Positions 16,917 to 41,870 of a DNA stretch of 64,000 nt are shown here, one piece after another. Position 1 is the stretch's first letter. Each line of letters opens with the position of its first letter. Under the pieces are notes generated by a model that made no database searches, had not been told where the DNA came from, and was given only the letters and a program-made list of their open reading frames with translations. Both the position numbers and the translations under genes were made by a program. The stretch lies in IMG/VR virus record IMGVR_UViG_3300031669_000001, positions 186,001-250,000 of that record; one strand, written 5' to 3'.

Positions 16917-16992
16917 TGGTCGCCCTGGAGGGATTCGAACCCTCGATCGCGATTTTAGAGATCGCAGCTTTACCGCTAAGCATTACAAGGCG
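16917..16992 (-). tRNA. amber suppressor tRNA (anticodon CTA)
   Basis: Acceptor CGCCTTG/CAGGGCG-A-CCA, anticodon arm GCGAT-CTCTAAA-ATCGC, T arm GAGGG-TTCGAAT-CCCTC. Confidence 0.88.
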
Positions 16993-25105: not shown

Positions 25106-25756
25106 TTATGCGATCTTGCAAACTTCATTGTAGAATTTGAGGTCAAGCTCATTAAGAGCGTTGAGTTTTTCGAAAATTGCTGGAGAAACAACCCCTATCT
25201 GAGTATCATTTACCACAGGAATAGAAGATTGAATTGGAATGTTTACGAGCTTAGCTATCTTTTCCAAGAATTCTGGAAACTCTGCGTATATTCCGATGAT
25301 GGTGTATTGCTTGATGAAGGTGAGAGCGTCTTCCAAGATCTTGTCTTCTTCAGTTGCGTCACTCGTGCAAAAGTGTTTAACTTGTGCGTTAGTTATTGAA
25401 TCTAAAAAGTCTTGGTTGCTTTCTTCACCATCGCTGTTGAAGAATAAATTTGCACCTTCTTTGAGAGCTTTCACGTTTGGAAACATGGGTGGAATGCCAC
25501 CCATAGTGTAAAACATCCAAGATATTGCTCGGTCTACAGGTTCTCTGATACACGTAATGTACTGATAATCAGGATTTAACTTTTCACCTAGAGAAAAATC
25601 GATGTGAGCACAGATAATCTCATCAGAATGCTGTAGCAATTCAGAATGAGATTTTAGTAGATGATTGTCAGACACTTTGTCCTTCAATTCACCTGCCAAC
25701 CAATTATTGAGAGCTTGTCCAGCTGTCTTGGGAATATGATCAATGATTATTTTCAT
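25106..25756 (-). CDS. sulfotransferase family protein
   Basis: HIPKTAG (5'-PSB loop) and REP.DR..S (3'-PB). Confidence 0.85.
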   Translation of the reverse strand: MKIIIDHIPKTAGQALNNWLAGELKDKVSDNHLLKSHSELLQHSDEIICAHIDFSLGEKLNPDYQYITCIREPVDRAISWMFYTMGGIPPMFPNVKALKEGANLFFNSDGEESNQDFLDSITNAQVKHFCTSDATEEDKILEDALTFIKQYTIIGIYAEFPEFLEKIAKLVNIPIQSSIPVVNDTQIGVVSPAIFEKLNALNELDLKFYNEVCKIA

Positions 25757-26377: not shown

Positions 26378-26818
26378 TCAGGCCATATCGATAGCTGCGA
26401 TTATAGTGCGTTCAAGATCATGGAAGACAGGTACAGAGTATCTGTCAGCGAGCGCGTGTAGATACTTCATCTTTGGGGCATCTTTTGGATACCCTAATAC
26501 AACTCTTCCATCCTTTACGTAATGTCCAAACTCAATGTTTGTTGTCATCGCTGGCATCTTGTTGAGTTCACGAGGAACCCAAAAGACGATAGCAGTTGAC
26601 ACCTCAAGAGCCAACCACTCCCAGTTTACTTGAGCGTCGTATTCATAGCCGTCAGTGTAAACTCTATTTTCAGGAACGTAAACTGTGCCTTCAAAGTCAT
26701 GAAGCTCTAAAATTTTAAGAGCCTCGGGTCTCCATGATTCTGTTTTTGGGTCACGTGGTGTAGGACCTGCTAAGAAGATAGCAGGTGTGATTGACTCGCG
26801 AGCGTAAATGACATTCAT
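26378..26818 (-). CDS. nucleoside 2-deoxyribosyltransferase-like protein
   Basis: IFLAGP, W...A, Q..WE, FW.PR, T..EFG. Confidence 0.8.
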   Translation of the reverse strand: MNVIYARESITPAIFLAGPTPRDPKTESWRPEALKILELHDFEGTVYVPENRVYTDGYEYDAQVNWEWLALEVSTAIVFWVPRELNKMPAMTTNIEFGHYVKDGRVVLGYPKDAPKMKYLHALADRYSVPVFHDLERTIIAAIDMA

Positions 26819-26952
26819 GGTACACCTAGGCAGTTTTGAGCTACCGTCTTCCAATTGGGCTTACAAAATTATGCCAATTGAACGCTTTGACATTAAGCTA
26901 TAGGTGATTAGGTTTCCATTATATTACATCACTTTTAGAAAGTACAATTATT

Positions 26953-27630
26953 TTACATCCACATCTGTTCAAGCTTACCCTGACGAACATCTCTCAGACG
27001 CATCTTGACTTCACTGCGGTGATCTGTAACTTGATCGTCACGTTCTCTGTAAGTTCTAACCTTATCTCCACGCATTCCAGAGCCTCGATCTTCCTTACGC
27101 TTCTTGTCGAGAGCTTCATACTTTTGAGCGTCGTAGAATCTCTTCACTCGAGTTTCAAGCATCTCGCGCGCTGTCTTCTTGTTGTTGTACTGGCTTTTTG
27201 TAGAAGCTTTAGCCTCTATCCCAGTTGGAAGGTGACGCATGATCACGCAACTTTCAGTCTTGTTGCGGTGTTGACCACCTGGACCAGTATCTTTCGTTGT
27301 GAACATCAAGATGTCTTTCTCGTTGAGACTCCATTCACTTTCTTCAGGCACAACCATGGCCACTACTGTTACCGTTGAAGTGTGAACTCTACCTTTTCGT
27401 TCTGTTGGAGGGATTCTTTGCCACCGATGACCACCGCTTTCTTGCAGTAGCCTATTGACGAGATTGTCCGGCCCGTCGACCGTTAGATTGATTCAACCGT
27501 GCTCGGTTTCAACCTCAACGCCAGCACGAACGCGCTCGGCGAACTTACAATAGATCGCAGCTTGATCGCTGACGAGCAACTTTGCATCTTCTCCACCTTC
27601 ACCAGGTCGGATTTCCAATAACACTTTCAC
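26953..27630 (-). CDS. RF1-type peptide chain release factor lacking domain 1, with in-frame TGA at codon 46 (27493-27495)
   Basis: SD AAGGAG + GTG start; LEIRPGEGGEDA...EHG*...ESGGHRWQRIPPTERKGRVHTST...GPGGQHRNKTES...RGDKVRTY all in one frame. Confidence 0.88.
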
Positions 27631-27733
27631 TTTACTCTCCTTTTATTTCGATTAACCTTCACTGTAATGGCAATGCAAATTATCGTGCCAATTACGCACA
27701 AAACAGATAACACGTTGAATATGTCTGCAATCA

Positions 27734-27976
27734 TCAATAATTCTTCCTACCTCTGTTTTGATCTTGCCATGAACCTACCTGTGCATAGGTACATGAGCCT
27801 TTCGTTCCATCAGGATTCTCAAATTCAAGCTTCTGATTCTTCCTGTCATGATACGAAACTTTTCTGGCTGCAGTTTCACCAGGTTTAAGGGTTAAACCTT
27901 CAGGCCAAATCCAATCTCCAGCCTGAATGTTGCGGGCTTGGTTGGGATCCATCTCAAATAGTTGCTTTAGTTTCAT
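27734..27976 (-). CDS. hypothetical protein (MKLKQLFE N-terminus)
   Basis: Late promoter CATAAATA immediately upstream. Confidence 0.65.
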   Translation of the reverse strand: MKLKQLFEMDPNQARNIQAGDWIWPEGLTLKPGETAARKVSYHDRKNQKLEFENPDGTKGSCTYAQVGSWQDQNRGRKNY

Positions 27977-27984
27977 GCAACTAT

Positions 27985-28200
27985 TTATGTGACTGGATCC
28001 TTATCTGCTCTGAAGAGCGCGCACAAACAGCAGTGAAAGTCTTCGCAATATTCATGAGGGTCTGATTCTTCTTGGTTCAAGTTACAGTAACCGTCACCTG
28101 TATATCGTCCTTGATCGTCTCCATTGAAGGAGTAGTGCTTGCAAAAATCACAGCATGCACCACTAGCACCGTCTTCCACACAACCATTACAAAATATCAT
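27985..28200 (-). CDS. Cys-rich small protein
   Basis: Multiple CxxC motifs. Confidence 0.6.
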   Translation of the reverse strand: MIFCNGCVEDGASGACCDFCKHYSFNGDDQGRYTGDGYCNLNQEESDPHEYCEDFHCCLCALFRADKDPVT

Positions 28201-28317
28201 TTACGTTCCTTTAGTCGAACAACTTGAGATGACGAACGATTAGGTAGGTGCCCAATCCAGCGCAGAGCAAGACGACGGGATTTGTCGCCGCTATAGCACA
28301 AGCGTGCCAAAAGCTTA

Positions 28318-29073
28318 TCATACGATGAATAACTCCTTCGTTTTAAATGTACCAGCGTCTTTAACGTGAGGCCAATGGTTGATAACGTCCTGTATCAAAT
28401 TGAGAGCTCCGAGAAAATCGGCGTTCAAAGATTGCAGACCAGAGTTGTAGCAATTCGGGTCACCTTCTTCGGCGATGAAGGTGACATCTTCTTCTTTATT
28501 TGCAAACGTAAACATAATCCTGCCGCACATCGTGTAGGTGCGAAGAGTTGTAGGACCAAATTCTCCACTCATTCCACGTTGGTCAACGGCCGTGATCATG
28601 TCAAACATTCCTTGACGATACACTTGCCGTAAAAATTTATCAAAAGTTTGCTGTAGCACGATGCCTTGTGCGTTGCAATACGATTCAACCTGGTTGGAGA
28701 TGTATTTGTCATCTTCGAGAACGTCGGCGAGTAAAAATCCAATAGTCGTCTGCACAGCAGACTGGCGCTGGAACATGTTGCTCTCGCCAATATCAAGAAC
28801 ATTTGGAACAGAATGTTCAGTTTCCTTCTCGTACATCTTACGAAATTCTAACGTCTTATCACAAGTACCAGTTCGCAGCTCTTCGAAAGCGTCTACGCAA
28901 ATGTCATGAAGGAATGGTTCTATACGCCAGAAGTCATACTCGTCATCTTCAGGAATGCTTAAGTTTTCTAGATAATGCGCCAAGAACGCGGTAAATGTTC
29001 GCTGACCCTTCCAACGAAAGTCAAAGTTAGCGTGATGTACCTTGAGCTTTGAGATTAGTTCATTCTTGTGCAT
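28318..29073 (-). CDS. hypothetical protein
   Basis: 251 aa ORF. Confidence 0.7.
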   Translation of the reverse strand: MHKNELISKLKVHHANFDFRWKGQRTFTAFLAHYLENLSIPEDDEYDFWRIEPFLHDICVDAFEELRTGTCDKTLEFRKMYEKETEHSVPNVLDIGESNMFQRQSAVQTTIGFLLADVLEDDKYISNQVESYCNAQGIVLQQTFDKFLRQVYRQGMFDMITAVDQRGMSGEFGPTTLRTYTMCGRIMFTFANKEEDVTFIAEEGDPNCYNSGLQSLNADFLGALNLIQDVINHWPHVKDAGTFKTKELFIV

Positions 29074-29076
29074 TGT

Positions 29077-29460
29077 TTACACCGTTGCAGGTGCTTTTGC
29101 GAACCATTCTTTCGCATCTTCTGTTTCGCAGCGGAATTGTTTGCCAGGACGTTTTGGGTCTGTGAAGACGAAATTTGCACGGTGGCAACGTGGGAGATAA
29201 CCAACCAACTTGCGGCCGCGAGTACCTTCAGTTTGCAGGTTGTACAAGTTCATGTAGAACTTGAGTTGCTTGTCTTCACGAGATTCTGCACCTTCGATCT
29301 TCGCGGTAAGCTTTGTGTGAAACTCACCAGAGGAAAAGCTGATGTTACCAATTTCGAAGTTGATACCAACTTTGTCTCCGTACGCTTTCATTGCAGCATT
29401 GAGACCGGCGCGAATTGCTTTAAAATCAGTGTCTTTGGTGAAAGTTGTGATTTTAGCCAT
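29077..29460 (-). CDS. early hypothetical protein
   Basis: Directly after an early promoter, with SD. Confidence 0.7.
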   Translation of the reverse strand: MAKITTFTKDTDFKAIRAGLNAAMKAYGDKVGINFEIGNISFSSGEFHTKLTAKIEGAESREDKQLKFYMNLYNLQTEGTRGRKLVGYLPRCHRANFVFTDPKRPGKQFRCETEDAKEWFAKAPATV

Positions 29461-41704: not shown

Positions 41705-41716
41705 ACAACGATTGAA

Positions 41717-41787
41717 CGACATACGGGGAATCGAACCCGCGATCTCCGGCGTGAAGGCCAGGGTTTTGTCCGTTAAACTACACATCT
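41717..41787 (-). tRNA. Glu-like tRNA with a 6-nt anticodon loop (CTTCAC), no CCA
   Basis: D and T arms intact; stem CTGGC/GCCGG. Confidence 0.5.
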
Positions 41788-41870
41788 CAGATCTTTTTTC
41801 AAAACTTGCTGGAATCGATTAAAATCTGTCAATCGTGATCATATCCACGGCAGCAACCGCTTCAATAATT

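Follow-up and report, generated by a model that had tools for sequence, protein, structure and literature searches.

The sequence analysed here (the window) is a 64,000-nucleotide stretch, bases 186001-250000, of IMG/VR record IMGVR_UViG_3300031669_000001, a 345,069-bp phage record with terminal repeats from a soil metagenome. On its minus strand lies a shortened gene for an RF1-type translation-termination factor, whose full length can only be read if the ribosome passes an internal UGA stop. The parts of the gene are as follows.

27637..27642 (-), Shine-Dalgarno (SD) sequence AAGGAG, six bases upstream of the start codon.
27628..27630 (-), GTG start codon, which sits where relatives have ATG (M-K-I/V-x-L-E-I-R).
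27496..27630 (-), first coding piece of 45 codons, the start of RF domain 2 (E-I-R-P-G-E-G-G-E-D-A, helix alpha5 and the first beta strand), ending in the Gly codon GGT (27498-27496).
27493..27495 (-), in-frame UGA, the recoding site, in the context GGU UGA A.
26956..27492 (-), second coding piece of 179 codons, the rest of domain 2, domain 3 (GGQ) and domain 4.
27469..27482 (-), small 5-bp hairpin that starts 10 bases after the TGA, present but not conserved and probably not a signal.
27403..27411 (-), Pro-Pro-Thr codon-recognition tripeptide (RF1-type PxT), preceded by Gln-Arg-Ile.
27271..27279 (-), Gly-Gly-Gln peptidyl-tRNA hydrolysis motif.
26953..26955 (-), TAA, the true terminator of the gene.

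A first-pass annotation made from the sequence alone had described this arrangement, including the strong SD and GTG, the 45 codons of domain 2, the TGA, the PxT and GGQ motifs in the continuing frame, the lack of domain 1 and the hairpin, and every one of these sequence statements was confirmed. To define the domains, the two pieces were searched against Pfam, which placed the first on PCRF profile positions 101-139 and the second on PCRF 162-194 and the RF-1 domain (E 4e-21). A six-frame PCRF search of the 345-kb genome then scored the two pieces as a single 70-bit match across the TGA, which covers profile positions 94-194 only; no other PCRF match was found in the genome, and only three codons (V-K-V) precede L-E-I-R. 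Domain 1 is therefore absent and not split off elsewhere. The open reading frame (ORF) list shows only the 45-codon piece and a 136-codon GGQ piece. The downstream neighbours are a nucleoside 2-deoxyribosyltransferase-like gene (26381-26818, -) and a sulfotransferase-like gene (25109-25756, -), and the upstream neighbours (27737-29460) have no family match; these genes gave no functional clue.

We next asked whether the stop could have a trivial origin. The genome uses TGA as a terminator: 40 of 95 ORFs of at least 300 codons and 129 of 311 ORFs of at least 150 codons end in it, and same-frame neighbours joined by a single TGA with coding-like sequence on both sides are not enriched, which rejects a genome-wide reassignment of TGA (code 4 or 25). 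The TGA stands in a 193x contig of the source run and in a contig from an independent freshwater-sediment study, whose only two differences, at 27538 and 27550, are synonymous third-position changes; the stop is thus neither an assembly error nor unique to this assembly. It is kept at the same codon in relatives of 63-78% identity with synonymous sites near saturation, namely the loci L007, L009, L010, L011 and L176 (L numbers denote family loci recovered in our scans). Pairwise dN/dS is 0.06-0.15 for the 42 codons before the stop and 0.08-0.15 for the 150 codons after it. These values, together with the conservation of the 45-codon piece, reject a pseudogene and a product made only from a downstream start, the latter having been named beforehand as a condition that would refute readthrough. 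The one RNA run held only a fragment upstream of the gene, and the inference that both pieces are translated and constrained rests on sequence comparison.

To determine how widespread the interruption is, we first searched proteins with the second piece, which returned more than 2000 proteins at E 1e-10 or better. Most are 134-197 residues long, meaning that they were called from after a break, and the few of 224-231 residues show W at the break. For two of these, P0004 and P0008 (loci L007-L009), the DNA has TGA there, because the gene caller chose code 4 on short contigs; these "full-length" database proteins are artefacts of the code choice. IMG/VR was then scanned with an alignment of the family, which returned 442 relatives, mostly on phage contigs of 100-700 kb. 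The best 80 of these were taken, of which 79 were analysed (L020 duplicates L011) and 77 were informative. Of the 77, 37 have an in-frame stop and would need readthrough (36 TGA, 1 TAG), 39 need a +1 shift at CTT-stop (36 TGA, 2 TAG, 1 TAA), and one is uninterrupted; none of them has domain 1. A metagenome scan added 16 informative loci, all recoded, among them L176, which at 75% identity has CAC GGC TGA ATA at the window's site. As a control, the same method applied to one genome per prokaryote species gave 71 canonical bacterial RF1 genes, all uninterrupted, as well as seven family members, all on MAG contigs. Two further canonical full-length RF1 genes, L141 and L148, came from candidate-phyla (CPR) MAGs labelled Gracilibacteria and Peribacteria and have a single in-frame TGA; in L141 it sits where the close homologue L148 has Gly, and we attribute these stops to the code 25 use of UGA for Gly. 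One protein, P0109 (L192), looked like an uninterrupted relative, but on its 2-kb contig a 1-base indel upstream puts the N-terminal piece into the downstream frame while CTT TGA C is still present, read as I-F-D-L; it is either a natural fusion or an assembly error. The same family is carried by the largest published phage genomes (634-735 kb, among them phages of 634, 636 and 735 kb; loci L090 in LR745206, L091 in LR756504, L092 in LR756501, and L046), with one or two in-frame TGAs at codons 39-54; the 50 kb examined of LR745206, the 634-kb phage, is in the standard code.

The two types of recoding site differ as expected from their mechanisms. Frameshift members have a strong SD-like sequence in the 18 bases before CTT, with a median anti-SD duplex energy of -9.9 kcal/mol, compared with -1.9 for readthrough members and -2.7 for background; 30 of 38 frameshift members reach -6 or lower, as do only 3 of 38 readthrough members and 11% of background windows. 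This is the prfB arrangement. Readthrough members lack the stimulator but share a context. In 27 distinct contexts, the codon before the stop is Gly in 23, compared with 5 of 129 true TGA terminators of this phage, and the base after the stop is A in 16, C in 9, G in 2 and T in none, whereas T follows 30 of the 129 true terminators. In E. coli, U after the stop gives the strongest termination, and A or C after UGA the weakest. No RNA structure is conserved after the stop: the consensus fold has an energy of -2.3 kcal/mol, the nearest predicted pairs are 45 bases away, and Rfam finds nothing there. The 5-bp hairpin folds in the window alone, is broken in L011 and is absent from the other clade members, so its proposed role as a signal is not supported. 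Selenocysteine is likewise rejected, as no SECIS-like element follows the stop. Ribosome hopping from the Gly codon is rejected because the residues directly after the stop are conserved and align to the RF1 beta strand.

We then examined the position and history of the stops. A maximum-likelihood tree has three main groups: a readthrough clade, the window's clade, which is mostly readthrough but contains the frameshift members L012 and L034, and a frameshift clade. Readthrough and frameshift switched at least two or three times on the tree, and an alignment with canonical RF1 shows stops at four or more columns within the first 55 codons. In the first clade the UGA sits exactly where RF1 has its conserved Trp: Thermotoga RF1 reads E-R-K-G-W there, and L057 ends at E-R-K-G before the stop. 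The frameshift clade has its CTT at that same column, the one uninterrupted member, L039, has Trp there, and L177 has Trp there and a TGA at the window's site. The window's site is eight codons further on, in the turn of the beta-hairpin, and some low-GC huge phages carry two TGAs. The repeated acquisition of UGA at different places, by two mechanisms, argues that the interruption itself is selected.

To identify the protein type, profile and structure-database comparisons were carried out. With NCBIfam, representatives of all three clades score 160-180 bits for prfA, 97-113 for prfB and 40-89 for prfH, all below the equivalog cut-offs because a third of the protein is missing; the window protein gives 160-162 bits for prfA (cut-offs 400 and 423), 100 for prfB and 70 for prfH (cut-off 167). 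The best PDB matches are RF1 chains at E 1e-34, compared with 1e-17 for RF2, and homology to solved RF1 structures is unambiguous. The first piece aligns to Thermotoga RF1 residues 87-126, and Q-R-I-P-P-T ... H-T-S aligns to Q-R-V-P-V-T ... H-T-S of that protein. Across the family the decoding signature Q-R-[IV]-P-P-T-E-[KR]-x-G-R-V-[HQ]-T-S-T is nearly invariant; the tripeptide is PPT in 65 of the 76 loci in which the motif could be read, two members have Ser-Pro-Thr, and the GGQ columns are invariant. In canonical factors, Gln three residues before the tripeptide, Pro-x-Thr and the Thr of H-T-S specify UAA and UAG. However, the family differs systematically from canonical RF1 around the decoding site, with G-G-x-D in place of G-G-x-E at the tip of helix alpha5, G-G-H-R-W-Q in place of G-V-H-R-V-Q, PPT, and two basic residues after T-E, so that its codon specificity is a prediction and it might read UGA. 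It also lacks domain 1, whose loss should remove the contacts with the L11 stalk and with RF3, and has a shortened beta-hairpin in domain 2. PrfH, the domain-1-less RF homologue paired with RtcB, is rejected by its low score and by the absence of RtcB and SmpB from the genome; PrfH is not known to have a PxT or SPF tripeptide or to be recoded. ArfB, which has a GGQ domain and a basic C-terminal tail but no codon-reading domain, is rejected by a score of 24 bits against 100 and by the presence of domains 2 and 4.

The tRNA complement was also surveyed. The window holds 42 tRNA genes and the genome 52 (window 35258-55477, -, and genome 306555-319331 outside the window), and the genome also has a permuted two-piece tmRNA (tag ANDANGALALAA). 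There are two tRNA-Trp(CCA) genes, one with a U11-A24 D-stem pair, the pair reportedly created in the Hirsh UGA-suppressor tRNA. The only UCA-containing candidate in the window (41716-41789, -) has a 6-base anticodon loop, CUUCAC, a G.G mismatch in the acceptor stem and a 3-bp T stem; ARAGORN labels it Glu|SeC, but it is not clearly a copy of the phage tRNA-Glu genes and could not be assigned to Glu. No tRNA with a UCA anticodon lies near any of the 79 related loci, and a dedicated UGA-suppressor tRNA is unsupported, although not strictly excluded. A tRNA-like element lies directly after the RF gene (26818-26907, -; Rfam tRNA 39.6 bits, missed by ARAGORN), with normal acceptor, D and T arms, an anticodon arm replaced by a 7-9-bp stem with a 12-15-base loop, and an encoded CCA that overlaps the ATG of the next gene. 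Its homologue in L010 (3085-3153) scores 49.9 bits and has a 6-base anticodon loop, AUUCCA, and in L017 a normal tRNA-Trp(CCA) occupies the same place; the element may be a processing signal or an unusual decoder. In many relatives (L012, L019, L032, L033, L049, L053, L067 and others) the RF gene lies inside dense tRNA arrays on the same strand, which suggests a shared translation module, whereas in the window the array starts about 8 kb away. A well-formed tRNA with anticodon CUA, an amber suppressor, is also present (16917-16992, -), but TAG ends only 32 of the 311 long ORFs and there is no excess of in-frame TAG between coding-like ORFs, which rejects a link to amber suppression.

Taken together, these results are best explained, with moderate confidence, by a 225-residue RF1-like class-I release factor without domain 1, whose full-length synthesis requires programmed readthrough of the UGA at codon 46. 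In this view, most ribosomes probably terminate there and release a 45-residue peptide, whereas a minority insert an amino acid, most likely Trp from near-cognate tRNA-Trp(CCA), which both host and phage supply, and continue in the same frame. At the window's own site no homologue shows a sense codon, so that Trp is an inference. Both near-cognate readthrough and CUU-UGA frameshifting compete with release at UGA; the output would therefore rise when UGA termination, normally the job of host RF2, is slow or saturated, which for the frameshift cassette is the documented behaviour of prfB (PMC12421855). As the factor has the RF1 decoding signature, it should act at UAA and UAG and should not close the loop on its own UGA, and on that reading the device senses RF2 load and adds RF1-type capacity. 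This phage ends 48% of its long ORFs in TAA and 41% in TGA, and extra RF1-type capacity could take UAA duty off RF2, but this benefit is conjecture. The analysis itself establishes that this is one gene with a conserved UGA in a leaky stop context, that a full-length product requires passage of this UGA in frame, that both pieces are under purifying selection, and that the family chooses between readthrough and a prfB-like +1 frameshift, whereas the inserted residue, the readthrough level, the codon specificity, including peptide release at UAA and UAG and non-recognition of the internal stop, and the physiological purpose are inferred. The first-pass interpretation, programmed readthrough acting as an RF2 sensor and the cross-regulatory mirror of prfB, is thus partly supported: readthrough of one RF1-type gene lacking domain 1 is backed by comparative evidence, and the prfB parallel is stronger than could be seen from the window, as about half of the family carries a literal prfB-type cassette in the same part of the gene, but the sensor function rests on motif rules for canonical RF1.

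Self-regulation as in prfB is less likely but remains a serious rival. A factor with altered specificity, either omnipotent or including UGA, would terminate at its own internal stop, and its level would be set by negative feedback independently of host RF2. The recoded release-factor genes known to us are all self-regulating, namely bacterial prfB (PMC12421855), Mimivirus and Megavirus eRF1 (PMC3521657) and plant eRF1 (PMC5397192). The altered decoding-site residues speak for this view, as do the two members with Ser-Pro-Thr and the members with TAG or TAA at the recoding site and the same PPT motif (four IMG/VR loci, plus L184 and L185), since an RF1-type factor would read those stops itself and an omnipotent factor explains them in one stroke. 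On the other hand, the three RF1 determinants are conserved, prfA scores far above prfB, and by the tripeptide rule Pro at the first position excludes G at the second codon base. A fixed attenuator or timer without a sensing role, which would keep the factor at a few percent of the mRNA's potential or delay it until phage tRNAs, such as tRNA-Trp(CCA) or an unusual tRNA, accumulate, appears unlikely. The large tRNA set and the proximity of RF genes to tRNAs speak for it, but any weak start or promoter could set a low level, and this would explain neither why UGA is chosen in 72 of the 76 recoded IMG/VR loci, at several independent positions, nor why half the family uses a frameshift cassette whose yield is known from prfB to depend on RF2. 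A decaying gene, an assembly error, selenocysteine or a genome-wide TGA-to-Trp code is refuted by the results above, although public callers translate the stop as W on short contigs and one odd tRNA is labelled Glu|SeC.

One of the closest known systems is the programmed +1 frameshift of bacterial prfB, which also has an internal UGA early in a class-I release-factor gene, passed in competition with termination. Relatives of the window gene carry the same cassette (SD-like sequence, short spacer, CUU UGA, often followed by C), but the window gene needs no frame change and has no SD-like stimulator, the site lies in domain 2 at codons 34-54 and not in domain 1 at about codon 26, and the protein is RF1-like. 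All CUU-stop +1 cases in RECODE are stated to be prfB genes (PMC10885494), and a survey of prfB frameshifting does not treat phage genes. The nearest precedent is the class-I release factor of Mimivirus and Megavirus, which needs both a frameshift and a readthrough (Jeudy et al. 2012, PMC3521657); that factor is of eukaryotic/archaeal eRF1 type, omnipotent and therefore self-regulating, with both events in one gene, whereas here the factor is bacterial RF1-type and each phage uses one mechanism or the other. Canonical RF1 shares domains 2-4, the PxT-type tripeptide, GGQ and the C-terminal helix. In the Q-beta A1 protein, an in-frame UGA followed by A is read at low frequency by near-cognate tRNA-Trp without a dedicated RNA structure, as is inferred here, but there readthrough adds a C-terminal extension to a complete protein, whereas here the terminated product is a 45-residue fragment and only the readthrough product can be functional. 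Phage RF1 and RF2 genes lying beside tRNAs have been listed for huge phages (Al-Shayeb 2020, PMC7162821) and tied to code switching in stop-recoded phages (Borges 2021, bioRxiv 10.1101/2021.08.26.457843), but in the text searched neither paper mentions internal stops, frameshift cassettes or loss of domain 1. Literature searches, within a collection that covers few subscription journals, found no description of recoding in phage release-factor genes. PHROGs has no family for this protein beyond a full-length RF model of unknown function, and public names are "peptide chain release factor 1" or "PCRF domain-containing protein" on truncated calls. Gene callers split or truncate these genes or translate them with the wrong code, and public annotation therefore holds only fragments of 134-197 residues or code-4 artefacts.

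Recoding inside a release-factor gene is the textbook example of translational feedback, but it was known only for RF2 and for the eRF1 of giant viruses; here a large phage family has it in an RF1-type gene and uses two interchangeable mechanisms, so that the interruption looks like a conserved regulatory device and not damage. A more far-reaching reading, possible but tentative, is that large phages carry a cross-wired termination sensor, in which a domain-1-less RF1-type factor is made only when host RF2 fails to clear a UGA, and which has been built repeatedly by readthrough or +1 frameshifting at several positions in the gene. This would be the first case in which one release-factor class is regulated by the activity of the other, and it would imply that phages monitor and rebalance the termination capacity of the infected cell. 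If the factor does not read UGA, the circuit couples the two termination pathways and would give a direct handle on how phages with large tRNA sets manage termination.
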